From assembly GCF_030028105.1 (NCBI RefSeq), contig NC_092383.1, positions 86,509,921 to 86,573,920 on the forward strand: a stretch of 64,000 bases of DNA, written 5' to 3'. How positions within the stretch are numbered: position 1 is the first letter of the stretch; every line of letters begins with the position of its first letter. A program made the position numbers and the translations under genes. This DNA comes from Mobula birostris. Taxonomy: Eukaryota. Shown here one piece after another: positions 1-53,609 of this stretch. The notes beneath the pieces are model-generated. The model saw only the letters and a list, made by a program, of their open reading frames with translations, made no database searches and was not told where the DNA came from.

Positions 1-2924
1 ATGAGCTTCAACTGCTATGCTTAAATTTTTAAATAATTGGGGAAGAGAAATTTTTCTTTGATCTCAGGCTTGACGCATGTTCAAGAAAATCAGGAATGCT
101 CAGTTTCCAAGATATGAGTTTGTTGAAGTTAATCATGTCAAATATGATAAACACTAGTTGAAGAGAAACAGATTTCTCTCCCAACTGGCTCTACTTGGAA
201 GCAGTAGCAGTGAAACCACCCGCAGCGAAAACCTTATACTTTACATTTGGGCTGGAGTAGTTTCTTACCTTTGTGCGGTTGTCATCAATTCTGTCACAGT
301 ATTTTCACAGAAATCAATTCTCCCTGTTAAAAGAAAATAAAATAAAATTTCAGCTGCTTTGTACTTGCAAGAACAAGAGAGCACAGTTATTAGACCAATA
401 GGTACTTGAACATGGTGGACCAAAGGTGATCTATTACCTGATGCACATTTAAAGATTAAAGATGAGCTTTATTTGTCGCATGTACATCTGATCATACAGT
501 GAAATGTATCGTTTACAACAGTTACCAACAGAGTTTGTGCTGGGGGCAGCCTGCAAGGGTTCCATGCTTCTCGCACCAAAATGGCTTCCATAGGACTTAC
601 TCATCCTAACCTGTGCATTTCTGGAACGTGGGAGGAAACTGCGGCCCCAGAGGAAATCCTCGCAGTCACTGGGAGAACATACAAACAACTTGCAAACAGT
701 GGTGGCAATTGGACCCTGATCGCCGATCGCTGGTGCTGTAATAGTGTTACAGTTAATTGCTGTGCTCCTGTGCAGCCAATTACATTTACTGGCAGTTTGG
801 ATACAGGGAGATAATCCAACAGGATAATGCAGGAGGTTTTCTCAATGAAAAAGCAAGGTCTTTTGTTTCTCACATCTCTTGATGTCTCTACCTCTGAGAA
901 AAATAACTCAATCTTTCTTGAATACTGGTTCACCACATTCTGGGAGAAGAAATCTTTCCTAATCCCAGTCTTAAATGTCTCACCCTTCAGATAATTTCTA
1001 AGATTCCAAGCTTACTTACTTACTGTCCGTTACACCACTGGTGTTTAGGGCAGCAATGAAGGTGTCCTATCTCTGGCAGTGTTCGGGGCTTCCTTCATTG
1101 TGTCAGTTGGTTCCTCTCGGTTTTCACTGCTGTCAGTCATGCAAGTCCCAGGTAGAGACTGAGCAATACCGTCAAACTCTGATGGAGAGGAATTTTTCAT
1201 TTCTGTTTCCATGACAATTTTGTTGAACCAATCAGGCTTGTCAGTCCTGAGTGAACCCCCCGAACGTGGAGGATTGGGGGACCACTCTAAGTCTGGCCCC
1301 TACCCTCTGACCTGTTCGGCATGGGTGACCCGATGAACTGCCAAAGCATAAAGCCCTCACTCCAGCCAACGTAGCTCTCTGCGTCATTGAGGCATGCAAA
1401 CCTCCAAATCTAACGACAAATTTGTGGTTCTCTTGGAGGTAAGTCTCATTAGACTATCCTGTATTCCCTGGCATTTGAAGCATCCTACCTGCATCTGTAT
1501 CACCCTGCTAAAATATTGCTCATTTCTATGTGATCACCTCTCAGCCTACTGAACTCCATCAAATAAAAACCAATTACATTTGCTCTCTGATCTTGTGTCA
1601 CTTGTGGCATTCCAGAAATCAGTCTGCTGATCCTTTGCTTGCCTTCTTCCTTAACAAGAACATCTTTCATTGAACCAAATCTGCTGACAATGCTGGTGGC
1701 CCAAGACTGAGGCTCGAGTCAATGTCTGATCGATTTAAGCTTCAGGCCAGAAAGGAAAGATCGGGTATGGGCCAAATCGAGGCGGTGAGTCCTGCGTACA
1801 AGAGCGTGTCAAAGCAGCAAGAACCCCTACCATCCAAGCTATGCTGTCTTCTTGCTGCTGTCAGTACGAAGGAGTTGCAGGGGGCTTAGATCCCATATTA
1901 CCAGGTTCAGGACCAATTATTATCTGCAACCTGTAGGCTCCTGAAACATCATGGATAAATTCACTCACCAACACTGAACTGATTCTGCAACCGATGGACT
2001 CACTTTCAAGGATTCTACAGTTCATCTTCTCAGTATTTATTTGTTTATCTCCTTCACCTTTCCCCTTTCCCTCTCTCACCATTCTCCTAACCTGCCCATG
2101 ACCTCCCCCTGGCGAGCCTCCACTTTCCCTGCTTTCCATGGCCTTCTGTCCCCTATCAGATTTCCCCTCCTCCAGCCCTTTATCGCTTTCACCAATTGAC
2201 TTTCCAGCTCTTTACTTCAACCCTCCCACTCTCTCAATTTCACCTTGTACTTCTCCATCTCCTCCCACCGACTTTCTTACGTTGACTTCTAATCTCCTTT
2301 CCTTTCCAGTCCTGATGAAGGGTCTCAGCCCGAAACGATGACTGATGACTCTTTTCAATAGGTGTTCCCTGGCCTTCTGAGTACCTCCAGCAATTTGTGT
2401 GTAGTGCTTTGCTTTCCAGCATCTGCAGGTATTCTCTTGTTAATTATTTATCTATTATTTGTTTCTTTTGTATTTGCACAATTTGTCTTATTTTGCACAT
2501 TGATTGTTTGACATTTTTGATTGTGTGTAGTTTTACATTGAGTCTGTTGTATTCATTTGTATCTACTGTGAATGCCTGCAAGAAAATGGATCTCGGGGTA
2601 GTATATGGTGACAAAAACTTAATTTTCTTTCAACTTTGAAGTGATTTATCTTGGAAGGACTATCTTAATGAATGGCCAGAAATATTACCAGATGAGATAC
2701 ATTCACACCCAGCCAGCGAGAGTCAGATCAGAGACAGGAGACCCTGTGCTGAGAGACTCACATTTAAACGGCTGTGCCGAAAAGCTTCTCATTCTCTGAA
2801 ACGTGGTGACAACATACACTTAATGCTCCTGTGTGAAGTTCCAACAACACAATATCCAGCACACATCAGTCATTCAGTTGTACTCCATTGACCATCATAA
2901 AGAATCAAACCCTCCAGCACTTAC

Positions 2925-3245
2925 CCATGCTGTTGACTTCAATCATATTTCTGCAGCTGCTGACACTGTTGGACATGGACACACTGACCACTTCACTGGA
3001 CTTCTCTCCATTAATATTTGAGGCTTTGCAATAATACAGATAATTTTTGTATTTTATGGATTGGCAATGTAGATCAAGTTTATTTGTGTCAGAGATCTTT
3101 GAATCCTCAGATGGCGTCTTTTCATACCATGAGTACTGAATGGGAAGGGATCCATGGACAGACTCACAGGACACTGACACGGAGTCCCCACAATTTGAGC
3201 CATTTGTTTGTGGTGAAAATCGAAGCAAAGGAAGAGACACAGGTT
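2925..3245 (-). CDS. Gene A exon: C2-type Ig domain (C2b class), MDIR/FcR-like
   Basis: Acceptor ttctgttccacag|AACCT, donor ATGG|GTAAGT; 321 nt, phase 1-1, open: EPVSLPLL...VSVSCESVHGSLPIQYSWYEK...LDLHCQS...YYCKASN. Paralogous to 62448-62768. Confidence 0.9.
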
Positions 3246-3840
3246 CTGTGGAACAGAATTAGTGAACATCTGAAAATCAAACACAAAGATTTCAGCAGTT
3301 CTGTATCTCAACCAGGAGCCACCAGTTTGGAATCTCAGCAGCTCATCTACTCCACTGTGTCTCGTCATCCTCACAGCTGCCAGAACGTACATGTCTGTCA
3401 GTACCTCCAAAAACAGCAGGACTCCTCATCAGATCAACAGTGGTGACACAGAGTATGTGTCAGTATGAAATTCAGGGCTTCAGTCTCTCTCAGCAGTGGG
3501 GAAACAGTCTAAAGTGAGACCAAACAGTTTGACTCTGGAATAGCAGCATTTGTGGATGTTCTGGAAAACTCTCCATAGGTTGAAAGCAGGAAATTGTCAG
3601 ATACATACAAAATGAATGGTGACTTCATTTTGTGAAGTCAGAAAGAGATGAGTTATACAGCTCTCGTTACATGCACGTGCAGTTCAACTCTTTGAGTGAT
3701 AATGCATTATGCAGAAAGTTTAAAGTTAATAACTCATCTCCTTCTACTTTAGGCCACGAACGTATCAATCACCTCTGATGTGGACCACTTTCTGGAAGTC
3801 CAAAATGCCGGCTTCTACAAAGAATGGATCTGTATGCTCC

Positions 3841-4483
3841 ATGACTCTTTAGATGCTGGATTAGTTCCTGAGGATTGGAGGGTGGCATGTAACCCCACTT
3901 TTTAAGAAAGGAGTGAGAGAGAAACTGGGGAATTATAGAATGGTAAGCCTGACATCGGTGGTGGGGAAAATGCTAGAGTCAGTTATCAAAGGTGTGATAA
4001 CAGCACACTTGGAAAGCGGTGAAATCATCGGACAGAGTCAGCATGGATTTGTGAAAGGAAAATCATGTCTGACGAATCTCAGAATTTTTTGAGGATGTAA
4101 CTAGTAGAGTGGGTAGAGGATAACCAGTGGATGTGGTATATTTGGATTTTCAAAAGGCTTTTGACAAGGTCCCTCACAGGAGATTAGTGTGCAAACTTAA
4201 AGCATACGGTATTGGTGGTATGCTATTGATGTGGATAGAAAATTGGTTGGCAGACAGGAAGCAAAGAGTGGGAATAAATGGGACCTTTTCAGAATGGCAA
4301 GCAGTGACTAGTGGGGTACCGCAAGACTCAGTGCTGGGACCCCAGTTGTTTACAATATATATAAATGACTTAGACAAGGGAATTAAATGCAGCATCTCCA
4401 AGTTTGCGGATGACACGAGGCTGGGCGGCAGTGTTAGCTGTGAGGAGCATGCTAAGAGGATGCAGGGTGACTTGGATAGGTTA
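3841..4483 (+). mobile_element. CR1 LINE RT fragment (young family)
   Basis: [12 protein letters not shown]...FADD; close to the 38476-41696 element; absent from the paralogous intron near 63.2 kb. Confidence 0.9.
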
Positions 4484-5489
4484 GAAGCGGGCAATTCAGA
4501 AGTTTTCCAGATGTTCCTCTGTACTCTCATGTCCGTCTCAATCAAATCAGAATTGTGCACGGTCCCCTACTTAACAGATAACAGACATCACCATCGAAGT
4601 GGTTGTGCGTGCTGCTGTCGCGCCGCCATCTTATCCTTCTCATTAGTAAAGGCTTCATCTCCCTCTGGCTGAAGAAGTTCCTCCTCATGTCTCTTTTAAA
4701 GGGACATCTTTCCATTCTGAGTCTGTGCTTTCTGGTCCTAGATGCCCACACTGTAGGGAACCTCTCTTCACATCCACTGGGGTTTGCAATGCTCGATAGC
4801 TTTCAATAAAATCCACCCTCATTCTTCTAAACTCCAGCACGCACAGGCCCAGAGCCTTCAAATGATGTTCATACATTCAGGGAGTTTAACATCACCTGGA
4901 ATTTAACAGATGGATCCCTTTAGAATTGATATACCGAGAGTTCTTGGGAAACAAGTCCATTGCTCCCTGAAAGTGGCAACACAAGTGGACATAATGGTAA
5001 TGAAAGCATTCAGCACCTTTGCCTTCTTTACTCTACATGTTGGAGGGTGAAGCTGACTGGGCATCTTGTAGCTTCATAAAACACTGATTAGGTCACATTA
5101 GGAACATAATATGTATTTCTGGTTGCAACACTATAGGAAGGATGTTGTCATTTATCAGCCTATTTTTCAATCTATTGTAGATCTCTCTGCAAGCCATGAT
5201 TGCCCCCCTGACTGTGCAATACACACACAATCTTGGTGTCATCTGCAAATTTGCTGATTCATTTTACCATATTATCATCCGGATCACTGATACAGATGCA
5301 AACAACAACAGACCCAGCACCAATCCCTGCGCTAAGCATCATTGTTGCTAAATATATTTTAATTATGTTTGCCAGCGCCCCAGTAATTTCTGTACTTGCC
5401 TCCCGTGAGGTCCGAGATAACACGTTAGCAGGCCTTGGGGATATATTCACACTGATTTGCCTCAGGAAAGCAAACACCTCCTCCTTTAA

Positions 5490-8400
5490 CAGGGTGACGT
5501 CTCATAGAGTTCAGAAGCAGGAAAATATACTGAGCCTTCCACTGGAAACCAGTATCCCAACAGTGGATCAGAACTCACAGTGGATGAGAGTATTATGAGC
5601 GAGGTCTCCCCATCTTTGCACACTCGCCACAGGGTTCTGCACTGCTGTGGAGCCTCCGGATATTCCTGCTGCCCTGACTCTTCCCAGAGAAAAACTGAAT
5701 CAGACATTTCGGTGGAGACAACAAATCAATCAATGAGAAACCTACCATCAGATACTTGGAGATGCACATCAAACACTGGATCATTGCCAAAGGTTGTAAT
5801 TCCACATCTGTAAGGTCCTGTATCATTAGAGACAAGATTCTCCATAGTAACAGTAAATATTCCTAGGGATGTGTTATCTCTGATTGTCATTCTTCCATAC
5901 TGCTCATTTGTCCCATTTGTATTCACTAACGATGTGCATTGGCGACCCCACATGCGGCACAAATACTTTGTGTGTGAACGGTACATTGCTGCATAGTGAC
6001 AATCGATTGTGACCGCTCTTCCCACAACTCCTCTTCCTTCATCTTCTGTCCATAAAGCACCTGAAACTGAGGGAGAAAATCTTCAGAAAATGGACAGGTA
6101 AAATCAAATTTACACAAGCAGGCTCAAGTTTCAAGATTATTTAATGTCATTTCCTGTACAAACGTGTAAACTGGAATTAAATCGTTGTTATGCTGGATCT
6201 AAATGCAGCAGAAAAAAACACAAAAGATAATGAATACAATTAAAATAGCTAAAGATGTTTTATTTACAACTGACACTGTGTTACAAGGAATCTGCCACAG
6301 TGTCAATTGATATAAATAAATTCCTCACAGACAGAGAAGACAATAACATCGTCCCTCCTCACGTGCTCCCAGCTCTTCACAAGTAGCAATTTTTATTTGA
6401 TTGGAGTCATCATTGTCACTGCCCACTAATGTCTCAGTGTGTTTCCATATTTCTGAGTCAATAGATTACTGATCCAGTCCCACTCCTGGCAGGTGAGCCC
6501 AAGATCAGTGGGGGGTAACTTACTGGAGGCAGGATCGACCTGAATTTGCAAAGGCAAGATCTGATTTGGGATAGTCAACATGATCTTGTGCATTGGAAAT
6601 CCTCCCCCAAAACTATTTGACTGAGTTTTTTTTGAGAGACGATGAAAGGACAGGACCTTAGAGATTAGCAATTTTTGTTTAGCAAGGTTTATGACCATAC
6701 CTTGCATAGCAGACTGATCTGTAATGTGAGATCACATGGTAAGCTACCTGGATGGATATTGAATAGGCTTGGTGGAAGGATACAGACTGTGGTAGTGGAG
6801 TGTTGGTTTTCTGACAACATCAGACTTTATCACCAGCAATGTGCCATCAGGATCGTTGCTGTTATTTGTTAACCACTCTTATTGTCATCAATATTAATAA
6901 TCTGGAATGAAACTGTAGGTGGCATGATTAATAAGTTATGGGTGAGACAGCAGTGTGGTAGACAGTGGCAAGAGTTGTGTAAGTTTACACGAGGATCTTG
7001 AAAATGAGCCGGTGTTCAGCCCCATTATTCTGTGCCAGCAAGCTGCCCCCTCCCCACCTGCGCCTGTATTGTCTGCTTGCATTTGACCCGTCTCCCTCTC
7101 TTCTCGGTCCAACTATCAGGTGGAAGGTGCAGGAGCCTTGGGGCCCACACCACAGGGTTCGTCAACAGTTGTTGTCCTGCAGCTATCAGGCTCCTGGATT
7201 GGTTTCACTCGCCTCAGCACTGAACTGACTCCGCAGCTGTGGACTCACTTTCAGAGACTCTGCCTCTCATGTTCTATGTATTATTTGTTTACATAGTTTT
7301 ATTATTTGCACGATTCATCATCGCTTGCACATTGATTTTTTGTCAGTCTTTGTTGTGTGTGGTTTTACATGGATTCTATTGTGTTACTTTGTTTTGTGGG
7401 CAAAGGTATGGTGGATAATCACAGTCTTTATCCCAGGGTGGGGGAGTTGAAAACTAGAGACCCTCGGCTTAAGGAGTGAGGGAAAATTCTTAGAGAGCCC
7501 GGAGCAGCCGTGTTTTACACACACAGCCGTGTGTGCATGGAAAAGGCTGTCAGAGGAAGTACTAGAGATGGTTACAAATACACTATTTAAAATACATTTG
7601 GACAAGTTCATATATAGGCAAGTTTTAGAAGGATACGAGACAAATGCAGTGAAATGGGAGAAGCTCAGGAAGACACTGTGGTCAGCACAGATGATTTGGG
7701 GTGAAACTCCTGCGTCCATAACCTATAACTCCCTGACTCTGCAGCATCCTCTCTAAACTGGAACATGCTTTTAAAAGGATAAATTCAGAATTCTATTTCA
7801 TTGCATAGATGTGACAGCTCATGGGATCACAGCCTATCAGATTGCACTTCAATCTCAACAATCAAAGTTCAAAGTATACTTATTATCAAAGAATCTATAC
7901 TATATACAACCTTGAGATTCACCTCCTTCCAGGCAATCACAAAAAAATAGAACATCCCAATATACAGAAAAAAGAGCAAATCAAAGTAAGCAAATAACAT
8001 TTGGAACTGAAATTCACAAAACTGAGGCCACAGCCAAGAAGCCAGTCATCACTGTAGTCAATTCATGAGGCCATTAATTGCCAACCACAGCCTCAGTTCA
8101 GCGTAAAGACACGTAAACCTTCTGTGCAGCAAGCTGAACACCAGCCCATCCCTCGCCTTGGACTGACATTCCTTTAGTGATTAAAAGGGAATTGAAGGTT
8201 TATTATCCTTGTTGTAATCATGAAATGCAGCAGCCTTGTTCATAGAAGGAATGGATTTCCTTCTCATGTCTCAAAGCGAGTGAGGTTTTTTATTTAACAT
8301 ACAAAAACCCAATTTCAGCGGTTAGTAATTTACCTGGGATGCTCAGACATTCAAAAGCTAGAGACGACCAAAGACAATGAGACCATTAGACATAGGAGGA

Positions 8401-8900
8401 GAATTAGGCCATTTGGCCTATACAGTCTGCTCCACTATTCCATCAAGGCTGACTTATTATCCCACTCAATTCCATCCTTGGCATTTCTCCCCATAATCTT
8501 TTGATGCCTTTCCTAAACAAGAAACTATTAAGTACGCTTTAAATATACTCAATGTCTTGGCCTCAAAAGCCATGTATGGTATTGAATTCCACAGATTCAA
8601 CACCCTCTGGCTACAGAAATTCCTCCTCATCTCTGTTCTAATGTACGGAGTCTGCACATCCTCCATGTGGAATGTATGGGGTCTCCCCGAGTGGTCCTGT
8701 TTCCTCCCACAGTCCAAAGACATACTCATTAGGATAACTGCTCTTTGCAGGTTGCCCTGTGATTATGTTACAGTTAATTGGGTTTGTCGAGAGTTCGATC
8801 GGTGTTGTGACCCAAAGGGCTGGAAGGGCCTATTCTGTACTCTATCGGTAAATAAATAAAATAAAGGGATGCCCTTGCATTCTGAGGCTGATTTTTCAGG
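5490..8900 (+). repeat. Segmental duplication, paralog of about 55372-58450
   Basis: Colinear match across the Vb exon and both flanking introns. Confidence 0.85.
5746..6060 (-). CDS. Gene A exon: V-type Ig domain (Vb class), CD300/pIgR-like
   Basis: Acceptor ccctcagtttcag|GTGCT, donor GATG|GTAGGT; 315 nt, phase 1-1, open: VTIDCHY...HTKYLCRMWGRQC...FTVTMENL...DTGPYRCG. Four Cys, including the C-C' pair typical of the CD300/pIgR family. Confidence 0.92.
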
Positions 8901-9635
8901 ATGATTTCCCCATAAGGAAACCACTTTTGATCATATACCTCCAAGTACCCCAAAATCCTGTTCTTAATAATAGACTCCCACATCTTCACAACCACTAAAG
9001 TCAGGCTAACTGGTTGACAATTTCCTTCCTTTCGCCTCCCTCCTTTCTTAAAGAGTGTGGTGATACTTCCAATTTTCCAATCCTTTGAACATTCCAGTCT
9101 AATTATTCTTGAAAGATCACCACTAATGCCTTCATGATTTCTTTAAATAACTCTTTCAGAAACTTGGGATGTAGTACATCTGGTCCAAATGACTCATCTA
9201 CTTTCAGATCCCTCAGCTTCTCAAGCACGTTTTGCTTAGTAATAGCAACAACACTCATCTCTGCCCCTGCCATTGCCAAATTTCTGTCATTCCCACTAAT
9301 ATTTGCAATATTATAAGTCCTTCCTTTTGCTTTTATGAGAATCAGAAGTCGATACCAGTCTGGACTTTTCAATGTAAAGCCAGAAGTATTAATGGAATGC
9401 TCTCAATTTGTCGAGATGCGCAAGTCCAACTATGTTTGAGATGCTCCATATCTTCCAGGAGCAAGTGACAGACTTAACTGTTCACTGCACTTTAGTTCTA
9501 CCCCATGGATGCTGCAATGTGCAGCTTCTACAAATGCAAAGAAATTCCTTACCCTCACTAGAGGTATAAGAGCAGCAGTAACAGAGTAATAAAAAGAAAT
9601 ATTTAAATGTATCCTCCCTTGAAATTAGAACTTAC

Positions 9636-9956
9636 CGCTGCCATTGATTTCTGTCACGTAACTGCAGATATCTCTGTTGTTGAAGACTGTCGCATTAACC
9701 ATTGCACTGGATCTCGCTCCAAGCCGATTTGAGGCACTGCAGTAATATTGCTGGTGTGTGTGCTTGAAGGATTGACAATGCAGAGTCAGTTCATTGGTAT
9801 CTGAGATCTTCGGATACCCAGATGAGGTTTGTTCATACCATCTGTATTGAATGGGATGGGATCCCTGGAAGGACTCACAGGAAAGTGACACTGAGCCCCC
9901 GAGACGTGAGACATTTGCTGGTGACAGATATCGAATCACAGGAACAGACACGAGTT
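9636..9956 (-). CDS. Gene A exon: C2-type Ig domain (C2a class)
   Basis: Acceptor tctttcccacag|AACTC, donor AGCG|GTAAGT; 321 nt, phase 1-1, open: VSVPVIRY...SVSLSCESFQGSHPIQYRWYE...YYCSASNRLG. Confidence 0.9.
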
Positions 9957-10019
9957 CTGTGGGAAAGAATTAAACATTCAGACACTGAATGAACATCTGA
10001 AAATCAGACACTCTTCTGT

Positions 10020-10560
10020 CACTTTATTACGTACAAATATTAACCTGATCATTAATACAAATATCTAATCAGTCAATCAGACGATCAGCAACTCAACTCA
10101 TCAAAGCATGCAGAAATATTCAAGAGTTTCAGTCAATGTTAGGCCAAAGTCAGAATGCGGAAGTATTGTGATCTAAGTACCTTTGAGCATGCAATTATTG
10201 CTGGTGCCAGACGGGGTAGTAAATATCTAAGGCACTACTATCCTCCTGGGATTTTCACACACAACTGTCTCTAGAGTTTAGTGAGAATGGTACGAACAAC
10301 ATGAAAAAACATCCAGAGAGCAGCAATTCTGTGAACAAAAGTGCTTTATTAATGAAAGAGGTCAGAGGAGAATGGCCAGACATGTTCATGCTGACAGAAA
10401 GGTGACGGGAATTCAAATAACCGTGGGTTATGACAGCGGTGTGCTGAAGAGCATCTGAAGGTACAACACGTCAAAGCTCGAAGTGGATGAGCCACAGAAG
10501 CAAGAGACCATGAACATCCACTCAGTGGCCACTCTGTTATGTTCAGGAGGTTTAAAGGCA
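10020..10560 (+). mobile_element. Tc1/mariner-like relic in the Va-C2a intron
   Basis: Degenerate transposase N-terminus-like sequence and actttattaggtac-type ends; orthologous copy in gene C (23170-23238 and 24334-24548). Confidence 0.5.
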
Positions 10561-10760
10561 GCAACTTGTGAGATATCTGTCACATGTTTGGAGGCTTTCA
10601 GGAGAGAATGAAATTGTAACTGGGTTCAGTGACCTGCCGTATAGAGGGAGACATTTGGTACTGATATTAATGCAGAGATAGTGAGGGATGGACAGTGTCT
10701 GGCAAATATCATGAGACTTTTATTTTATGGAAGGCACAAATCAATCACTGAGAAACCTAC

Positions 10761-11075
10761 CATCATTTACTGTTAGTTCTAAATTAAATCTTGTATCGAG
10801 ACCTGGTGTTGTAATTCCACAGCCGTACCATCCTGAATCTCCAGAGTGAAGATCTTCCATAGTAACAGTAAATATTCTCCGTTCCGGGTTATCTGTGATT
10901 GACACTCGTCCACTCCGTCTGTGCTGCTCATTTGTTTGCACTAAAACTGAACAATAGAGAGTCCATCCATGGCACCAATACTTTGTGTGTGAGCGGTACT
11001 TTTCTTCATAGTGACAATCGATTGTGATCGCTCTTCCCACAACTCCTCTTACAGATTTCTCTGCCCACAATGCAC
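10761..11075 (-). CDS. Gene A exon: V-type Ig domain (Va class), CD300/pIgR-like
   Basis: Acceptor ccctcagtttcag|GTGCA, donor GATG|GTAGGT; 315 nt, open: ALWAEKSVRGVVGRAITIDCHY...KYWCHGWTLYC...DSGWYGCG. Confidence 0.93.
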
Positions 11076-11507
11076 CTGAAACTGAGGGAGGCATTGTCAG
11101 ATGTGAGGGAAAGGAACAATTTAATACAACAATTATTTTTCAACATGACGGTAAAAGCAGGTGCAGGTCATGTACAGCATGTGGTCCATGACAACACAGC
11201 CAATGATTTTTGTGTGAAGTGCAGTCAGTGCTGTTACTGTGTCAGCCGTGTCAGTGATCTCTCTTCCCTGTGTCGGTACATTGTGGGTTCACTTCCCACT
11301 CCAGAATCCTGAGCAGAAACCCAGGGCTGATCTTCCAGTGCACTGCTGGGGGAGAGCCGTAGTGTAGCCAGAGGGTGTTGACTCTATGGAATTCAATACC
11401 ATACACAGCTTTTGAGGCCATGAAAGTGTTCAACTTTCAGTTGCTTCAGAATATGTCAGCCTTTGAAATGTCCACAGAGCTTCCAGCTATTTCATAAGAT
11501 GCTCCCA

Positions 11508-11511
<4 letters not shown>

Positions 11512-11569
<58 letters not shown>
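11512..11569. repeat. (TG)n microsatellite, about 29 units, in intron 1 of gene A
   Basis: Direct reading. Confidence 0.97.
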
Positions 11570-11572
<3 letters not shown>

Positions 11573-12465
11573 CTGTGTGTGTTCAGACAAGGTTCTGAAG
11601 CAATTTGTAAATATTGTACCTATCAAGTATTTCTATGTGTAGTTAGAAGGTGGCGCAACAGTGGTCATTAGTGCTTCTGTGTCTAGAAACTCAGGTGAGA
11701 TTTCAATAACTGTTGAGATACTTTGAGTATGAAAATCCAATTTATTATTTCTGGTATTTAAAAAACAAGTATCAATAATAATAATGATGAACTGTCAGAT
11801 TGTAAAGATCCCATCTAGATTGGAAAGACTTTTAGGGAGAGAAATTTCTTATCCCTACCACCCTGGTTTACCTTTGACTCCAGATCTAGTAACGTTCTAT
11901 GCTAACTGCACCACTGAAGTGGCCCAGGAAGGACTCTGATTTCAAGACAATAACGTCAAATGTCGCAGTGATCCCTGCAGAGAGAGAACAGATCCCAGCA
12001 ATGGTAGATCTGATGTTCTCGCTTAACAGGTTGCAGTAGATTTCTCCAGCTGGACATATTCTCCCCAAACCTGGCTCTACACAATTCTTCTTTTCTCCTT
12101 ATCTGCTTCCACCTCTCACCCACCTCCAAACACCATCCCTTTTCCACCCCATTCCATTTGCCTGTTGTGCTTCACTATTCCTCAGCCCCGACTAACTTGA
12201 GGACCCAGTTTCACACTTCCCCCTCTCCTATTTAACCCTCTCCCGCTCTACTCACACATGAGGCAGGGTCTCGACCCGAACCATTGACATTTCCTCTGCC
12301 CCTGACAGAAGCTGCTTGACCCATTGAGTTTCTCCATGAGTGAACTCTGAGCTCCAGTTTCCGACAGCTTTAGTGTCTACGGGTATCAAGCATTCTTGTG
12401 GAAACGTTGTACGACCCCCAATCCAACACTGATTATGCAGTTGTCCAGTGCTGTCTGTAACTCAC

Positions 12466-12505
12466 CAGGTAGGAAACCAGTCAGAAGGATCAACGTCCAC
12501 AGCAT
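12466..12505 (-). CDS. Gene A leader (signal peptide) exon
   Basis: ATG at 12505, MLWTLILLTGFLP+G, donor CCTG|GTGAGT, phase 1; completes in frame with ALWA of the Va exon. Paralogs at 21471 and 25922. Confidence 0.88.
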
Positions 12506-19986: not shown

Positions 19987-21470
19987 CTAACCAAAAGTAA
20001 ACTGAAATTGAAAGCAAAATTCTTGAGGATCTGAAGAGAATTCAGAATTGAAGCGAATGAGGGTGAGAGACAACATGATAGAGATGTATAAGATGATCAG
20101 AGGCAGAGATCAAGCGGAGATCCAGAGAATATCTCAGGGCAGAAATGGCCAATGTGTGGGGGAATAATTTCAAGGTGATTGGAGGAAAGGATTGAGAGGG
20201 TGTCCGAGGCATGTTCTTTACACAGAGTGGTGGGAGCATGAAAAACCTTGCCAGGAGTGATGGTAGAGGCAGATACACTTAAAAGACTCTTAGATAGGCT
20301 TATGGATTATAGGAGAGCTTTAGAAGGGATGGATTAGATTGATCTTATAGTAACACACAAATGCCAGAGAAACTTAGCAGGCCAGGCAGCACCTATAGAA
20401 ACAGGTACTGTCCACGTTTCGGGCTCAGACCCTTCAGCGTCTACTCCCCAATTTTCAGGAACAGTAATTACCCTTTCATCATCATACTCCTGAACCGATG
20501 TGGATAACTTCACTCACTTGAACTATGAACTGATTCCACAACACATGGAATCAGTCTCACTTTCAAGGATTCTGCAGCTCATACTCTCAGTATAAAAATA
20601 ATGTATTAAAATATGTGTATTTTTATCTGCACTATTTGTCTTCTTTTGCACCTTGGTTGTTTGTCTGACTTCATTTATGTAGGTTTACACAAATTCTATC
20701 ACATTGCTTTATTTTTCTCTAAACGCCTGAAAGAAAATGAATCTCACTGTAGTATATGCTGACATGCATGTACTTTGATAATAAATTTACTTTGACTTTG
20801 ACTAGTGCAGCACTTTGTCAAAAGGCTTTTGAAAATCCAAGTAAACAACATCCACTGATGGACAAAGTCTCGTTCCTCTATGCAGCCTGTTAATTCTTTA
20901 AGGAGTTCTAACAAATTTGGCAGGGTAGATTTCTCCTTAAGCAGATTATGCTGACTTCAGCCTATCTTACCATATACCTCCAAGTACTCTGAAACCTCAT
21001 CCTTAATAACAGATTCTAACATCTTAGCAAACACTGAAGTCGGACTAATTGTCCTATAACATCCTGCCTTTTGTCTCCCTCCCTTCTTAAAGAAATGAGT
21101 GACATTTGTAGTTTTCCATTCCTCTGGAACCATACTTGAAAGATTATTACTCATGCCTCTACAATCTCTTCAGTTAGCTCCTTCAGAACCATGGGGTGCA
21201 GTCCAAGTAACTGATCCTATTTCACAATGTCCTCTCTCCTATTTACACCATCTTCCCTCTCCACTCAGGTTCAATGCAGAGTCTCAACCCAAACCACCAA
21301 CAATTCCCTTCCCCCAGACAGATGCTGCTTGGCCTGCTGAGTTCCTCCAGGAGATTTCTCTGAACTCCAGTTTCTGACATCTTTAGTGTCTACACGTATT
21401 CAAGCTCTGTTCTGGAAACAATGCAAACCAAAACTGATTATAAAAATACCCCATGCTGGTTGTCACTCAC

Positions 21471-21507
21471 CGGGTAGGAAACTAATCAGAAGAATCAAAA
21501 TCCACAT
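21471..21507 (-). CDS. Gene B leader exon (intact, orphan)
   Basis: ATG at 21507, MWILILLISFLP+G, donor CCCG|GTGAGT, phase 1. Confidence 0.75.
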
Positions 21508-21569
21508 TGTTTTATTCACTGAGACCCTGTCAGCACTTGTCTGTTCACAGAGTGAAATTGCTGTTGAAT

Positions 21570-24861: not shown

Positions 24862-25921
24862 CTGAAACTGAGGGAGGCATTTTCAGATTTGAGGGAAAGG
24901 AACAACTTCATGCAAACAAATATCTTGGAACACGAGTGTAAAAACAGGTCCAGGTCACGTCCAGAATGTGAACCATGATGAGCAACCAATAATTCCGGTA
25001 TGAAGTGCAGCCGAACGTACACAAATATAACAGCCGTTTCATTTAGGATGCTGCTCTAATTTCTGATGGAAATCTTATATTTTGCATCTGTAAGGTATTT
25101 CTATGTGTAGTTGGAAGGTGGTGTAACAGTGGTCATTACCACTTCAGTGTCAAGAACTCCAAGCATGATTTCAATTTCCATAAGGATATATTATGTGTTT
25201 AAATCCTATTTATTAATTATTTCTAGAATTTATAACCACATATCAATGATGGTAATAATCAACTACCAGATTTTCAAAATCCCATCTGGATCAGAAAAGC
25301 CTTTAGGGACAGAAATCTCTCATCCCTACCCACCCTGGCTTATCTTTGACTCCAGATCTAGTTGTATTCTTTACTTAATTGCCCCAGTGAAATGGCCCAG
25401 GAAAGACACTGATATCAAGACAATGTCAGCGTGTTCCCTGCAGAGTGAAATCAGATTCCAGCGATGGTAGACCTGATATTCCCACTGAACAGCCTCCAGG
25501 AGATTTCAGTAGCTGGATATATTCTCCCCCCACTTGGCTACACACTACTCCCTTTTTCCCTTTATCTGCTTCCACCTCTCAGCCATCTTCAAAATCCACC
25601 CCTTTTCCTCCCCATTCCATTTGCCTGTCATGCTTCACCCCTCCTCAGTCCCTGACCACCTAGTAGACCCAGATTCACATCTCCCCCTCTCCTATTTACA
25701 CTATCTTCCTCTCCACTCAGACTTGATGCAGAGACTCAGCCTAAACTGTCGACAGTTCTCTTCCCCCTAACAGATGCTGCTTGGCTCATTGACTTCCTCC
25801 GGAAGTTTGCTCTGAACTCCAGATTCAGTCATCTGTAGTGTCTGCACGCATCAAGTTCTGTTCTGCAAATGGTGGACGACCTCCAAACCAACGCAAATGG
25901 CCAGTGCTTGCTGTCACTCAC

Positions 25922-25958
25922 CAGGTAGGAAACCAATCAGGGGAATTGAAGTCCACAT
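25922..25958 (-). pseudogene. Gene C leader exon (degenerate signal peptide)
   Basis: MWTSIPLIGFLP+G with GTGAGT donor; hydrophobic core broken by Ser and Pro; downstream exons disabled. Confidence 0.8.
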
Positions 25959-27449
25959 TGCTTTATTCACAGAGACCCAGCCAGGACCTGTCTGTCCTCA
26001 GCAAGAAGTAACAGTGAAATAAAAATGAGGAAGATGGCAGCAGGAGGTTCAATAAGAGAACCACAACAGGGGTATGGTATGTGACAATCTGAAAAGCTTT
26101 TAGCTATATTTAGCAAGACAGAAACATTTAAGCAATTCCCAAAAACTGAATGAAATGTTGAGAAGAGTTAAAATGGTAGATACAAGAAACAGCAGTTGGT
26201 CTAACCTTCAGCAAAAACAAACTGCTGCAGATGTCCTGAAGCAGAGCATTAATCTAAAAATGTTGCCTCTGGGGATCCCACCTCTCTCCCCACATTTCTC
26301 CAGAAGTTTTATTTTTTTACTTGATTAAATATGTTAGGTGCATTGAGTTATTGGGGAAACTGCTGATGTTGAAAACTAAATGGTGGAAAAGGAAAAAGCC
26401 CATGTTGAAGGTTGTCGTGATTGTGAGTTGAAGTTACGATCTGGGCTTCGTGTCTACGGGTTCCATGTGCTGATTTGAGGCTGAGGGAGTGACCCTCCCC
26501 ACTGCTCCAGTCTTTTCTTCTAAATGCTATTTGCTTCCTTTTGTTTTTGATTTGTTCTTTTCTCTCGCTGTACATTGGGTGTTTGGAGGTCTTCTTTTAT
26601 TTGTGGGTTATTTTGGGTTTCTTTGATTTGTGGCTGCCTGTAAGGAAGCTAACCTCAGGATTGTATAATGTATGCATACAATGATGATAAATGTACATTG
26701 AACTATTGAATATTGAAAGGCCTAGATAGAATGGATATGGAAGGGATGTTGCCTGTAGAAAAGGAGTCTAAGACCAGAGGGTACAGCCTCAGAGTACAGG
26801 ATGTTCCTTTAGAACAAAGTTGAAATTGAGAGTGATGAATCTGTGGAATTCACTGCCACAGATGGCTGCAGAGGCCAAGACACCAGGTGTATTTCGAGTG
26901 GAGATTGATAGTTTCTTGATTAGTAAGGACGTCAAAGGCTACGGGGAGAAGTCAGGATAATGAGATTGAGAGTAAAAATAAATCAAACATGATGAAATGG
27001 TGGAATAGACCCAAGGGGAAGATTGGCCTAATTCTTCTCCTATGCCTTTTGGTTTAATGGTCTTCTAATACATTCACCAAACCTGTGAACTCTTATACAC
27101 CCCTCCAATATTTCCATATTCAGTATCTGCCATGATGATAATTCAATCAAATCTGTTTTGCGAACTTGCTGCTGAAGAAGCAACAAACTAGGAAATAGGA
27201 GTGATGTAGAAAGAGCTTTTCATGCAAACTTAGCACACAGTACTTGGCTTAATTCACTCTCCTCTCTGAAGACTGTGTCTGCTCTTTGAAGAAACTTTAA
27301 AGCTCCACTCTTCTGAATTCTATTCCATCTGTTTGTGCAATTTCAAGAGCTCTGATGGGATTTCACTTTGCTTCAGTTATATATGAGAGGACAAACTGCT
27401 CAATGGAATTAACCATTAACAATAGGCAAAATCCATGTCAAATCCTGCC

Positions 27450-47262: not shown

Positions 47263-47350
47263 CTTGGTTTCCCTTGTGAACCACGTGACCGAAATAGTGC
47301 AGATCAGGAAAGCGAAGAGCAGCCAACAACCAACCTTCCATATCATGAAA
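47263..47350 (-). CDS. Gene D transmembrane exon
   Basis: Acceptor cccctttacgcag|T, donor AAG|GTAGGC; 88 nt, phase 2-0, FMIWKVGCWLLFAFLICTISVTWFTRETK. Confidence 0.78.
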
Positions 47351-47422
47351 CTGCGTAAAGGGGAAGAGTAACAGAACTGATGAGATACAGAAACGAGATG
47401 GCTTTGTGTTTGAAATATTTAC

Positions 47423-47496
47423 CTCCTGTTTCCTCTGTAACATTAGTGGAGTGGGGTGAGGTAAATAAGCAGAGCTGGAGGAGTAAATAATGTTGA
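47423..47496 (-). CDS. Gene D candidate stalk exon (frame unresolved)
   Basis: Donor GGAG|GTAAAT, 72-nt intron to the TM exon; acceptors at 47496 and 47474. The frame that joins the TM exon contains TAA. Confidence 0.4.
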
Positions 47497-48229
47497 CTGA
47501 ATGAAAGGGAGAAAAACATCATCAGTTGGAATAAAACCATATTTTCTCGAGGCAATGGCAACATCTTGCAATGCAGTCATTCACTGATACTATTATGGTT
47601 GTTGGAATTACAGTAGATCCGCTAGAAAATGAATCTCAGGGTTGTATAATAAATTTACCTTGATAATAAATTTACTTCGAGCTTTGAAATCTTTTCTGCA
47701 CTACATCCAGTTGAATAACAATTCCCTTTTGTAACAGAGTACCAGATTCTCTACTCTGACTAATACCAGAAACCTTCTTCACTATAGTGACTCCACTTTC
47801 AAGGAACCATGTACCTGAATTCCAAGATCCCATTGTTCTTTAACACTTCCCAGGGCCCAACCAATCACTTCGAAAGACTTACTTGATTTGTCTTTTGAAA
47901 ATGCAAGACTTTGCACAATTCTGAATTAAACTCCATTTGCTATTCCTCAGCCCAAAAACTCAGCTCATCAAGATCCTCTGTAATTCTTCAAAATCCTTTT
48001 CACCAGGGACATGAGATGTACAGGTTGGAAAGGTGACAGCAAACTTCTCCATTCTCAGAGGTGAATGAAACTAGATGACATGGATTTAGATTTGAAGCGA
48101 TTGTTTTCACCCAGAGAGTGGTGGAAAAAGTGTCACAGTCAATGTTTGTGGAGTGTCTGAATGAGATCTCAAGTCACATCTCCATGGTAGGCTTTGGACC
48201 TTGTTCTGGAAGATAGGGTTTAGATACAT

Positions 48230-48700
48230 TACTGTGCAAAATACAGGTGCATTTAAAAGAATTCTGTAAAGTGACGATGCTTTCAAAAGTAATGAAATGA
48301 AAAATATTTAAATATTTAAAAATATTATAATGTGCATTAAGCAGCAATAAACTAAATCAAATCAAAGTTGGGTGTCACCACACTTTGCCTTTAAAACTAC
48401 TTCAATTCTTTCGGGTACCCTGTCATGCAGTTTTATAAGAAAATCATCTGCTAGGTTGTTCCAAGTGTCTTGGAGAACTTGCCACATTTCTTTTTCAGAC
48501 CTTGGCTTCTGCTTCTCCAAGCAATCACAGACAGCCTCGGTGTTGTGATCAGGACTCTGGAGATGATACCACCTGAAACTAAATAAGAATCGAAGGTGCC
48601 TAAGGCATTTGCAGTATACTGTAGATGGATGTGCAATGGAAATCCACATGGTCTTTGTCTGTGTTGTACGACTCTGGGACCAGATGAACCTGTTACACAA
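48230..48700. mobile_element. Tc1-like relic (related piece at about 36525-36900)
   Basis: Minus-strand QDTWNNL...LIKLHDRVPERIEVVLKAKCG resembles a Tc1 transposase C-terminus. Confidence 0.6.
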
Positions 48701-48861
48701 CAGCATTATCTGAACCCTGAAGCTTAAAGTTCAAAGTGGATTTATTACCAAAATACATATCTGTCATCATATACAACTCTGAGATTCAATTTCTTGTGGG
48801 CATACTCAGTAAATCTATAGATTAATAACCACAACAGAATGAACAGAATGACCACAACAGA

Positions 48862-50279
48862 ACAAAGGTTCTGAACTTAAAGAGGGGTAACTTTGAAGGT
48901 ATGAGACGTGAATTAGCTAAGTTAGACTGGCAAATGACACTTAAAGGATTGACGGTGGATATGCAATGGCAAGCATTTAAAGGTTGCATGGATGAACTAC
49001 AACAATTGTTCATCCCAGTTTGGCAAAAGAATAAATCAAGGAAGGTAGTGCACCCATGGCTGACAAGAGAAATTAGGGATAGTATCAATTCCAAAGAAGA
49101 AGCATACAAATTAGCCAGAGAAAGTGGCTCACCTGAGGACTGGGAGAAATTCAGAGTTCAGCAGAGGAGGACAAAGGGCTTAATTAGGAAGGGGAAAAAA
49201 GATTATGAGAGAAAACTGGCAGGGAACATAAAAACGGACTGTAAAAGCTTTTATAGATATGTAAAAAGGAAAAGACTGGTAAAGACAAATGTAGGTTCCC
49301 TACAGACAGAAACAGGTGAATTGATTATGGGGAGCAAGGACATGGCAGACCAATTGAATAATTACTTCGGTTCTGTCTTCACTAAGGAGGACATAAATAA
49401 TCTTCCAGAAATAGTAGGGGACAGAGGGTCCAGTGAGATGGAGGAACTGAGCGAAATACATGTTACTAGGGAAGTGGTGTTAGGTAAATTGAAGGGATTG
49501 TAGGCAGATAAATCCCCAGGGCCAGATGGTCTGCATCCTATAGTGCTTAAGGAAGTAGCCCAAGAAATAGTGGATGCATTAGTGATAATTTTTCAAAACT
49601 CGTTAGATTCTGGACTAGTTCCTGAGAGTTGGAGGGTGGCTAATGTAACCCCACTTTTTAAAAAAGGAGGGAGAGAGAAACCGGGGAATTATAGAACGGT
49701 TAGCCTAACGTCGGTGGTGGGGAAACTGCTGGAGTCAGTTATCAAAGATGTGATAACAGCACATTTGGAAAGTGGTGAAATGATCGGACAAAGTCAGCAT
49801 GGATTTGTGAAAGGAAAATCATGTCTGACGAATCTCATAGAATTTTTTGAGGATGTAACTAGTAGAGTGGATAGGGGAGAACCAGTGGATGTGGTATATT
49901 TGGATTTTCAAAAGGCTTTTGACAAGGTCCCACACAGGAGATTAGTGTGCAAACTTAAAGCACACGGTATTGGGGGTAAGGTATTGATGTGGATGGAGAA
50001 TTGGTTAGCAGACAGGAAGCAAAGAGTGGGAATAAACGGGACCTTTTCAGAATGGCAGGGGGTGACTAGTGGCGTACCGCAAGGCTCAGTGCTGGAACCC
50101 CAGTTGTTTACAATATATATTAATGACTTGGATGAGGGAATTAAATGCAGCATCTCCAAGTTTGCAGATGACACGAAGCTGGGTGGCAGTGTTAGCTGTG
50201 AGGAGGATGCTAAGAGGATGCAGAGTGACTTGGATAGGTTGGGTGAGTGGGCAAATTCATGGCAGATGTAATTTAATGT
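48862..50279 (+). mobile_element. Young CR1 internal fragment in a gene D intron
   Basis: Near-identical to 39462-40879; own stops at 49501 and 50269; lacks the 3' tail. Confidence 0.94.
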
Positions 50280-52974
50280 GTTTTTCCATTATCCATTTCA
50301 ATAATCTACTTACAAGGTAAAAACATATATCAACTTTCATGTCAAAAGTTATTGCAGAATATTTGGAGAGATTAGTTTATCTTGAACTCCTGGGATTAAA
50401 ACATGTTGTCGAGCGTTGGTTGTACTACTGGTTGTGAAAATGAAAACAATATTCTCACAGGCATTCAGTACAAGTAAATGAAATTATAAATTTCCCCTGA
50501 ATTATCTCTCATATGGCGGGGGGGGAGGCAATCATAGCACCAGCAATGAGAACATTGTACATTTAAGCAGGACTGGATCAAGTGACTTACCTTGCAGTTG
50601 ATACTGTTGTAAATGTTTCACATGAATATTCACGTCCTGTTGAGGCAAGGAAAGAAAATTCAGTCTCGCATGTTTACCCAGTGCAGTCAAGCAAGAGTAC
50701 ATGATTGGCAGGTGGAAACTCATGGTTTGAGTAAAAGGCTGATTGGTTACAGGGAGGTGAGTAATTTCTGTTTCTTGTGCATATTTGAACACCTGTTGCT
50801 GGGGAAATTACGAGGCTTGAGTTGGAGGGTTTGCAAACCATAATCCTAAGCAGACAGAAGTGGAAGTTCCAGCCAGGCAATTGACATCTGCCAGCTCTGG
50901 GAGATCTGTTGTTGGGGCCACAACACCCACCGGAAAGACATACACATCTCTGCACTGAGTGTATGTGGAGATATTGGACCAAGTACAGTTGTTGATACAA
51001 CAGGATAATGCTTCTGTTCTCAATGAAAAAACAACTTGTATAATGCAAGATGCTGGAGGAACTCAGCAGTTCAGGCTGCATCTATGGAAAGAATAAACAG
51101 TCGACATTTCAGACCAAGACCTTTCTGATGAAGGATCTTTGCATGAAAAATTGACTGTATACTTCTTTGCATAGATGCTGCCTGGCCTGATGAGTTCTTC
51201 CAGCATTTTGTATATGTTGTTCTTGTTCTCCAGCATCTACAGAATCTCTTCTGTTCCTGTTTTAATAGTGGGATGACAAATGTCATTGAACATCATAGAG
51301 TTATACAGTATGGGAACTAGCCCTTCAGCTCAATTCATCCACACTAACCAGCATGAGCTAGTCCCATTGAGTCTACTCCACCATTTCAGCACAGCTGATC
51401 CATTTCCCTTTCAACCTCGTTTTCCTGCCTTCTCCCCATTACCTTTCATGTCCTGACTAATCAAGAACTTATCAACCACAGCCATAAAGGTATCTGGTGA
51501 TCTGACCTTCACCACCACCTGTGGCAACAAATTCCTGTCTCACCTCCCTCTGGCTAAAGAGTTTCCTCCTCATCTCTGTTCCAAATGGACATCACTCTCT
51601 TTTGACTCTGTGCCCTCTGGGTTTTGACTTTCCCACCAATGCAAACATCCTCTTCACATCCACTGTATAAAGGCCTTTCACCATTCGATCAGCTTCAATC
51701 AGATCTCCCCTCATTCTTCTAAATTCCAGTGAGTACAGGTCCTGAGCCTTCAATTGCTATTCATATGATAATCTTTTCATTCCCGGAATCGTTCTTGTGA
51801 ACCTCCTTTGAACTATCTCCAATGCCAACACATCTTATTTTAGATAAAAGGCCCAGAAATACTCACAATATGGACGTCCCTGTAAAGGACAGGCCTTCAT
51901 TAATCAGAGGATTGAGATCAAGAGTTGTGAGGTAATTGTGTAATACCAGTGGTCACCATCTCCTGGCAGAATATCTATTGCAACCCTCTGCCTTCTGTAA
52001 GAAAACCAATTTCTATTATTAGAATATCTCAAATGAAGAGGCACTGTAACAAGATAAGGATCAGGTAATTTAAAATTGGATTTAAATTCACAATCCTTAG
52101 AATCCTACACCTGGATGGTGGTGGAGGCTGGATCAGTGGGGATCTTTAAACAGAAAGTACCGTAGATATTTTTTGATAAAGATCAGGAAATGGCGAACTG
52201 TAGGAAAATGATGCAGAAGAGCTAAGAAAGCCTAGTACAGATCAGCCAAGATGATATTGAATAGTGGAGTAGTCTTGAGACACCAAACAGCCTGCTTGGT
52301 TTCTTGAGTTCAGTCCTTACACCTATTGCATGTGACTTCCATTGCTTCTTTAGCCTGTATAATTCTCTCTATTTGCCACGAAACAAACTACTGGAAACTG
52401 TTTATAAATCCAGAAGGTGTGAGTTTGGGTATTTGCTGGTTCTCAAAGATGAGAAAATCTCAGTCAGCAACTAGAAATGTCAGCAATTTAGACGCAAAGC
52501 CACCATGCACAGCAAGAGCAGGCTGCAGGCAGGAAACTCTCTGGTGAGGGACTCACTTCTCAGCTACCGAACAGGGCATGCCGTTCCCTGCAAGATTTGT
52601 CACAATGCAGCTTAAAGAACATAACAGATGAACACTCCCACCCACTAACCCACCCCTCCACAACCCCCACCACCACTACTTTATCATTTCATGTCAGGCA
52701 CCTCAGGTAGATACACTATTGTGCCTAGCAGCAATTTACTTACATACAACCAATGTATATAAACAATTTTATGTATTTATATGTATCATGTTTATTAACG
52801 ATTGTGTTCTGTACCTTATTGTTATTTTTTATGGGTGCATTAGATCTAGAGTAACAATTAGTTTGTTCTCCTTATATTTGCATATTGGAAATGATATTAA
52901 GCAATCTTGAATCTTGAAGACGGTACATGATACTCAATCAATCTCCCTAATGATTCGCACCCTCCACCACTTAC

Positions 52975-53295
52975 CAGTGCCAGTGAACTGAATCACAAAG
53001 CTGCAGTTGTCTCCTCTGTTGTCGATGGACACGTTCACTATTTCACTAGACTTTGCTCCATGAGTATTGGAGGCAGTGCAGTAATATTGATAGTGTTGGT
53101 GTTTGAAGGATTGACAACGTAGATCCAGTTGACTGTTTTCAGAGACTTTTGAATCCACAGATGAGATATTTTCATGCCATGTGTACTGAATGGGAAGGGA
53201 TCCCTGGACAGACTCACAGGACACTGACACGGAGCCCCCAACACACACGATATTTGCAGAAGACAGATATCGAAGCACAGGAACAGACACTGGTT
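52975..53295 (-). CDS. Gene D exon: C2-type Ig domain (C2c class, membrane-proximal)
   Basis: Acceptor tctttcccacag|AACCA, donor ACTG|GTAAGT; 321 nt, open: VSVPVLRY...SCESVQGSLPIQYTWHE...YYCTASN. Confidence 0.9.
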
Positions 53296-53609
53296 CTGTG
53301 GGAAAGAATCAGTCAACATATTGAAATCAATATGTGGGCATCTGAACTCCACATCAATCCCAGATGCCTGAACCCCGCGTCTGCCACTATTCCAAAACAC
53401 AGCAGGAGTCCAGATCAGAACAGCAGCAATGACAGTGAGGATGTGATGTGTCAGCGTGAAAATCAGGGTACAATCTCTCACAGCTACAAGGAGACAGTCA
53501 CCACTGGTGTTTGAAAAAAAATAATGCAAGCGTTGTTTGAAGGTGATAGTTTAATGGAAACTTGTGAGACAAGCTCTTTAGCTACAATGATTGTGGCGAC
53601 TCCCTGTAA

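Follow-up and report, generated by a model that had tools for sequence, protein, structure and literature searches.

A probable MDIR5-type receptor gene with alternating V and C2 domains in Mobula birostris

Introduction

The receptors closest to the gene described here are built from immunoglobulin (Ig) domains on different plans. CD300 proteins carry one V domain each, pIgR carries two to five and ends in a long sorting tail, and neither is known to contain C2 domains. The MDIR (modular domain immune-type receptor) family, reportedly described from skates in 2006, combines one to six Ig domains from CD300/pIgR/TREM- and FcR-related subfamilies. Here we analyse a stretch of 64,000 nucleotides (nt) of the manta Mobula birostris (NCBI RefSeq contig NC_092383.1, positions 86,509,921 to 86,573,920), hereafter the window, in which the minus strand between positions 2925 and 12505 encodes a leader and four Ig domains in the order V-C2-V-C2. 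We read this region, with a probability of about 85%, as the 5′ two-thirds of one intact, transcribed MDIR5-type gene of the MDIR family of cartilaginous fish.

Gene structure

The gene has 8 coding exons over approximately 21.6 kb of the minus strand, and their joined coding sequence of 1518 nt encodes 505 amino acids. Starting from the 5′ end, the 40-nt leader exon encodes the signal peptide (12466..12505, with the ATG at 12505-12503 and the donor GT at 12465-12464) and ends in phase 1. Four Ig exons follow, each of 321 nt and phase 1-1. Va (10761..11081) encodes Ig domain 1, a CD300/pIgR-type V-set domain (Pfam V-set, E = 2.4e-13); C2a (9636..9956) encodes Ig domain 2, an FCRL-like C2/I-type domain (Pfam Ig_3, E = 5e-9); Vb (5746..6066) encodes Ig domain 3, the second V-set domain (Pfam V-set, E = 4e-9); and C2b (2925..3245) encodes Ig domain 4, the membrane-proximal C2 domain, corresponding to residues 335-441 of the RefSeq protein P0172. 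Both C2 exons are matched by Ig_3/Ig_2, the C2-like Pfam models. The leader and the four Ig exons are open, flanked by AG and GT and joined in a single frame, so that checks of exons, frame and Pfam matches bear out an initial annotation of this DNA, which had proposed an open leader-V-C2-V-C2 series with canonical splice sites and phase 1-1 Ig exons.

That annotation reached as far as 2925, but the gene runs on through stalk, transmembrane (TM) and tail exons on the same strand. The stalk exon (269..323) has 55 nt, goes from phase 1 to phase 2 and ends at the donor AG/gtaaga, where the slash marks the splice site. The TM exon has 91 nt (G000:C18:86501139-86501229, equal to L001 1219-1309) and the last coding exon, for the tail, has 48 nt (G000:C18:86500837-86500884, equal to L001 917-964); both lie outside the window, approximately 9 kb past its start. 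The frame from stalk to TM fits exactly, with phase 2 out and phase 2 in, and neither the TM exon nor the tail exon shows damage, both having canonical splice sites. All three additional exons were located via homologues. A hydropathy scan of the 30 kb downstream gave no convincing TM exon, because the basic residues of the TM exon lower its score.

Joined in this way, the exons give a translation that matches P0172 at every residue. P0172 is a RefSeq prediction of 505 residues that goes by the name ‘polymeric immunoglobulin receptor-like isoform X1 [Mobula birostris]’. The exon layout is the usual one-domain-per-exon, phase-1 arrangement of the Ig superfamily. It had been suggested that this exon architecture may be poorly documented, but the layout is ordinary, it is already present in the RefSeq model, and the skate MDIR5 protein has the same architecture.

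Both V exons are preceded by tandem acceptors 6 nt apart (cag/tttcag/; 11075/11081 for Va and 6060/6066 for Vb). Either choice preserves phase 1-1, and the upstream acceptor adds Val-Ser. The V exons had initially been drawn from 11075 and 6060; the acceptors used are the upstream ones, at 11081 in the RefSeq model and at 6066 in both the spliced contigs and the model. The model of the paralogue P0162 takes the downstream tandem acceptor at its second V, and the Val-Ser insertion may vary among copies or isoforms.

The claim that no leader or TM exon separates the Ig exons was also upheld. A blastn-short scan with the leader exon found no leader-like sequence at 2925-12440, the nearest such copies being at 21465-21525, at 25901-26001 and in the next gene, approximately 37 kb downstream. 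A tblastn scan of the same interval with homologous TM segments found no TM-like exon between the Ig exons, the nearest one being that past the window start. No ITIM-type cytoplasmic exons, that is, exons with an immunoreceptor tyrosine-based inhibitory motif (ITIM), were found in the window and its flank.

Relationship to skate MDIR5

P0172 aligns colinearly with the clearnose-skate protein that UniRef names MDIR5 (P0202; Rostroraja/Raja eglanteria), with 59% identity over 504 columns, 3 gaps and E = 0.0. The two proteins share the entire order of leader, V, C2, V, C2, Cys-containing stalk, TM segment WKVGRWLLF and short acidic tail. They come from different batoid orders, skate versus manta, and the manta stalk is 2 residues shorter in the alignment; it has apparently been shortened by its stop-codon donor compared with the longer stalks of the Hypanus proteins P0156 and P0175. 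In addition, the manta gene sits in a unit of approximately 105 kb present four times in tandem, and is annotated as ‘pIgR-like’ and not as MDIR.

With a close ray homologue as the query, the UniRef-named proteins MDIR3, MDIR5 and MDIR2 were recovered with E values from 1e-234 to 1e-106. MDIR3, MDIR2 and the manta paralogue P0162 resemble the present protein in their V and C2 subfamilies and in the type of gene cluster, but they have a hydrophobic TM segment and long tails with ITIMs, and are hence inhibitory. The ITIM-bearing MDIR3 has the domain order V-V-C2-V-C2, and the long-tailed MDIR2 is a two-domain V-C2 protein.

The locus also agrees with the skate family in other respects. The manta protein has four domains, V-C2-V-C2, from the two subfamilies that MDIRs combine. 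It belongs to a large multigene family with activating-like, inhibitory and motif-less forms: the surrounding cluster, at C18:85.9 to approximately 87.5 Mb, spans approximately 1.6 Mb and, counting both strands, contains no fewer than 40 related C2 exons, with ITIM forms that include P0162 and P0013 and charged-TM forms that include P0172 and P0200. Expression as spliced mRNA is seen at two junctions, in three to four runs. The MDIR5 colinearity, the matches to MDIR3 and MDIR2 and the domain types thus support the initial assignment to an MDIR-type gene, together with its statement that the family is not new; the family is that of the skate MDIRs, and the protein was already a RefSeq prediction under the name ‘pIgR-like’.

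Transcript evidence

Four public runs from one study, with coded tissue and species labels, contain parts of 5700-11100, and their contigs were aligned to that stretch. The junction 10761>9956, which the initial annotation had proposed for checking, is present in spliced contigs in all four runs, with 804 nt skipped and GT..AG ends. A second junction, 9636>6066, skips 3569 nt, again with GT..AG ends, and is present in contigs from three runs (X2, X3 and X4). One contig, with 3 mismatches, bridges it: of its 326 nt, 84 fall in Vb and 242 in C2a. The same junction had been predicted as 9636>6060; the link between the exons stood, and the acceptor moved to 6066. The C2a-to-Vb junction, the weak point for a reading as a single gene, is therefore confirmed as real. 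Across the contigs of these runs, the depth in exon bins exceeds that in unique intron bins by a factor of tens to hundreds. The other junctions, 12466>11081, 5746>3245, 2925>323 and 269>TM, are based on the identity of the coding sequence to the RefSeq prediction.

Several points weigh against an intact, transcribed MDIR5-type gene. Four of the seven junctions, the one from stalk to TM among them, rest on an automatic RefSeq model only. The runs are RNA by guess only, and some intron-containing contigs occur among them. Tandem copies that are 99-100% identical lie elsewhere in the cluster, and hence the contigs are not assignable to this copy alone. The stalk donor sits directly on a TAA, at which read-through would give a truncated, possibly secreted product. 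The 2006 abstract on MDIRs is said to describe MDIR5 as a form without characteristic signalling motifs. A complex prediction of the stalk, TM segment and tail with two copies of an FcR-gamma-like TM exon scored 0.02, which counts neither for nor against adaptor binding.

In the introns (4127-4672 (+), 8234-8776 and 10225-10405), a reverse-transcriptase-like open reading frame lies between Vb and C2b, and very high contig depth in intronic stretches is consistent with expressed or abundant transposable elements.

The 3′ end

The TAA also underlies an alternative in which the ectodomain is real but the 3′ end is mis-modelled, such that read-through into the TAA gives a soluble V-C2-V-C2 protein or a target of nonsense-mediated decay, and the gene is a decaying or secreted derivative. 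The stop follows the modelled donor immediately, in all four tandem copies; past the donor comes what looks like the decayed remains of a stalk and TM region, containing a second stop; the stalk and TM exons are separated by a broken V exon; the gene is surrounded by pseudogene debris; and no reads were seen across the stalk>TM junction. Against this, the donor AG/gtaaga is a good consensus and leads, in exact frame, to the intact TM and tail exons. The predicted paralogues P0242 and P0243 have the same stalk sequence up to the donor and then continue with a small extra exon, whose sequence we found in the flank and which would be hard to predict without transcripts, and Hypanus P0156 and P0175 join the same type of stalk to the WKVGRW TM segment. 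We therefore regard a mis-modelled 3′ end as improbable and retain the membrane-anchored, eight-exon gene.

The extra exon of P0242 and P0243, absent from P0172, is a 42-nt mini-exon, GSQPGIKSSPVQ, at L001 about 9828-9869 (window -131 to -172). In this copy, the end of the mini-exon is followed by TT rather than GT.

The broken V exon between stalk and TM (L001 1659-1907; window -8093 to -8341) has lost its acceptor, contains an in-frame TAG and is truncated after approximately 83 codons. It is skipped by the RefSeq model and may be a relic of a third V domain or of an older gene fused here. A third V-C2 pair was sought and rejected: this V-like exon beyond the stalk is broken and no C2 exon comes after it, and the gene is therefore not a six-domain receptor.

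We also considered the stalk exon as a recent chimera, in which a stalk+TM exon of inhibitory type was joined to an activating TM exon. This was rejected because stalk and TM are encoded by separate exons in the ITIM paralogue as well, where the stalk is followed by the same TM-like remnant, and because the Hypanus proteins too combine this type of stalk with the WKVGRW TM segment.

Domain types and comparison with pIgR, CD300 and FCRL

By sequence, the best solved relatives of Va are pIgR and CD300 chains in the Protein Data Bank, with pIgR ranking first. For comparison by fold, an AlphaFold model of domains 1-2 was used, with a predicted local distance difference test score (pLDDT) of 88. 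The fold search with this model placed teleost pIgR at the top and matched CD300lf with a template-modelling score (TM-score) of 0.88, a root-mean-square deviation of 1.9 Å and 38% identity; the best two-domain structural match to the model was the V-C2 portion of Siglec-5. CD300lf, CD300a and IREM-1 share with the manta protein the V-set fold and an extra C-C′ disulfide, at 36-39% identity and TM-scores of 0.83-0.89. In Va, the Cys36-Cys101 pair is accompanied by the extra pair Cys50-Cys57, and the second V domain has a corresponding extra pair at Cys264/271. The cysteines of the main pair are 65 residues apart in V and 46 apart in C2, and those of the second V-domain pair are 7 residues apart. 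An assignment of the V domains to the CD300/pIgR type is thus supported by sequence and by the predicted fold.

For the C2 domain, the closest solved chain is FCRL5, with E = 1e-32 summed over its repeats and 4e-4 to 0.1 per domain; six FCRL5 domains match it, each with modest significance. The C2 domain shares with FCRL5 the D4-D9 pattern CE..GS.PI.Y.. and YYC.A.N. C2a contains the pair Cys147-Cys193 as well as Cys181 and Cys218.

These affinities raise the alternative of a genuine pIgR or FCRL orthologue, that is, an Ig transport or Fc receptor rather than a member of a separate MDIR lineage. In its favour, pIgR and CD300 are the solved chains nearest to V and FCRL5 is the one nearest to C2, and the cluster shares its chromosome with an FcR-gamma/NDUFS2 pair and an IL10-family exon, which are markers of human 1q. 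The overall plan of the protein argues otherwise. Ectodomains of pIgR and CD300 are V-type throughout, whereas here the V domains, with their extra Cys pairs, alternate with C2; FCRL and FcR ectodomains consist of C2/I-type domains without any V-type domain and these proteins carry signalling tails with ITIMs or motifs like the immunoreceptor tyrosine-based activation motif (ITAM) or associate with FcR-gamma, whereas the manta protein mixes both domain types and its 15-residue tail lacks a tyrosine motif and is far from the long transcytosis tail of pIgR. No Ig binding is known for it.

The distribution of the pairing points the same way. Among 150 representative proteins matching the V domain, which we checked for this type of C2, the C2 was present in 22 of the 31 with V identity of at least 50% and in 1 of the 119 below 50%, a shark protein. 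Ten of the distant V relatives were looked up; nine belong to bony vertebrates and the tenth to an electric ray, and most are named pIgR-like, the rest being uncharacterised. We consider direct orthology to pIgR or FCRL unlikely and keep the assignment to the MDIR family.

The V-C2-V-C2 order recalls Ly9 (SLAMF3) and CD4, whose ectodomains are thought to derive from duplication of a V-C2 pair. The likeness is an analogy of architecture only, as these proteins belong to unrelated Ig subfamilies.

The V-C2 pair as repeating unit

Two-domain V-C2 members of the family exist, such as MDIR2 and P0232, but a division of the four Ig exons into two adjacent genes or transcripts, leader-V-C2 and V-C2-TM, is extremely unlikely given the contigs that bridge 9636>6066 in three runs, the lack of any leader-like or TM-like exon between C2a and Vb, and the same four-domain order in skate MDIR5.

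Within the single four-domain gene, the V-C2 pair behaves as the repeating unit, as had been proposed. We compared 30 chondrichthyan proteins, predicted or cloned, from mantas, stingrays, sawfish, skates, five sharks and a chimaera: their ectodomains are V-C2, (V-C2)2 or (V-C2)3, with a few V-V-C2-V-C2, and the trees of V and C2 domains show parallel patterns. Strict alternation, also part of the initial description, holds for the present gene but not across the family, in which MDIR3 and several ray proteins are V-V-C2-V-C2.

In trees of batoid sequences, the domains form four position-specific clades, among them ones with support of 99 for the second V, 99-100 for the internal C2 and 96-99 for the membrane-proximal C2. 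Vb falls in the ‘second V’ clade of stingrays and mantas (support 99) and C2b in the membrane-proximal C2 clade (99). The clades show that the two V-C2 pairs diverged before the split of stingrays and mantas, possibly earlier. Va and Vb are 57% identical and C2a and C2b 50%, and the DNA similarity between the two pairs reaches 25-55 nt beyond the exons before it ends in the introns. Within a single shark or chimaera protein, the V domains are near-identical to each other, and so are the C2 domains. This pattern points to recent duplication or homogenization of whole pairs, although merged gene models could mimic it.

Membrane anchor and proposed signalling

The encoded product is a type I membrane protein with a short Cys-containing stalk, a predicted TM helix that starts I-W-K-V-G-R-W and a 15-residue tail without a tyrosine signalling motif. 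Two basic residues, K465 and R468, lie in the TM segment IWKVGRWLLF. The WKVGRW motif is conserved in 20 predicted proteins of mantas, stingrays and skates, MDIR5 included. The ITIM paralogue P0162, which has the motif IVYADL that P0172 lacks, is 99% identical to the present protein in domain 1 and 97% in domain 2.

ITAM adaptors are the usual signalling partners of receptors that combine a short tail with a basic residue in the outer TM segment and that have an inhibitory twin; examples are FcalphaRI, LILRA, NKp46 and GPVI, which use FcR-gamma. The manta protein resembles FcalphaRI, LILRA/PIR-A, NKp46 and GPVI in having its basic TM residues within the outer third of the segment, in its motif-less short tail and in the existence of ITIM paralogues with near-identical ectodomains. 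It differs in having two basic TM residues, K and R, where the FcR-gamma-pairing receptors have one, and its adaptor use is inferred here. Because of the WKVGRW motif, the short tail and the near-identical ITIM paralogue, the features of the protein, which match those of paired activating receptors, suggest that it is the adaptor-dependent activating half of a receptor pair. In such a mechanism, the N-terminal V domain would bind the ligand, the Lys and Arg in the outer part of the TM helix would recruit an ITAM adaptor with a TM aspartate, and the protein would be the activating counterpart to those paralogues of the cluster that bear an ITIM and have nearly the same outer domains.

Chromosomal context

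We identified an FcR-gamma-like TM exon with clean AG/GT sites on the same chromosome, 11.9 Mb from the MDIR cluster (G000:C18:98440460-98440546; L005 1492-1581). It lies 18 kb downstream of NDUFS2 exons (C18:98420307-98422000), and human FCER1G is likewise downstream of NDUFS2. A CD3-zeta-like TM exon is located elsewhere, at G000:C7:39292028-39292111 (L004). The sole match to the IL10 family (PF00726) in the genome is an exon at G000:C18:93832095-93832304. In humans, FCRL, FCGR and PIGR are on 1q, with the counterparts of these marker genes as their neighbours. The presence of the IL10-family exon and the NDUFS2/FcR-gamma pair on the same arm is a hint that C18:86-98 Mb is equivalent to human 1q21-q32.

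According to reviews from 2014 and 2026, pIgR, FcRL and the FcR gamma chain are missing from cartilaginous fish; the same reviews ask how these animals manage opsonic phagocytosis and antibody secretion (PMC4016189; PMC13337447). Given the exon on C18, the published absence of the gamma chain looks outdated, and that of the receptors is open to question. One speculative and rather doubtful scenario is that, in cartilaginous fish, the MDIR cluster corresponds to the FCRL/FcR lineage and to the pIgR/CD300 lineage at once, in which case an ancestor would have joined pIgR-like V and FcR-like C2 domains, and bony vertebrates would have kept V-only and C2-only descendants. If this were true, MDIRs that use FcR-gamma could be the ‘missing’ Fc or Ig-transport receptors of sharks and rays.

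Taken alone, the gene is a routine family member, with its protein in RefSeq and the architecture of skate MDIR5. The 1.6-Mb cluster, which joins pIgR-like V and FCRL-like C2 domains in activating and inhibitory forms on the chromosome of an FcR-gamma-like gene, offers concrete candidates for the question posed by the reviews, and the gene described here is one intact and expressed member with a charged TM segment that lends itself to cloning and testing. RefSeq names its relatives ‘pIgR-like’, ‘Fc receptor-like 5’ and ‘CMRF35-like’ without a link to MDIRs, and MDIRs are hardly mentioned in the literature that we searched.

Tandem copies and neighbouring relatives

The unit of approximately 105 kb that contains the gene is present four times in tandem at G000:C18:86.19-86.62 Mb, a range that includes the window, in steps of 103-110 kb. 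There are four copies of the TM and tail exons, and copies of C2b were found at 100%, 99% and 90% identity. This arrangement indicates four tandem segmental duplications inside the cluster.

The rest of the window holds broken relatives of the family, all on the minus strand. Nearest to the gene are the leader-like pieces of debris at 25901-26001 and 21465-21525 already mentioned, a V pseudogene exon with a frameshift, a stop and a Cys>Tyr change (24862-24574), and further pseudogene debris in the form of a truncated C2 (23108-22917) and a V fragment with a stop (19978-19811). Farther along the window, an intact C2 (62769-62449) is followed by a stop-containing remnant of stalk and TM (60650-60522), a frameshifted V (55921-55608), a second intact C2 (53296-52976), a stalk (50649-50599) and a WKVG(C)W-type TM exon with a gap (47352-47263). 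These family exons at 47263-62769 probably represent one or two decayed genes.

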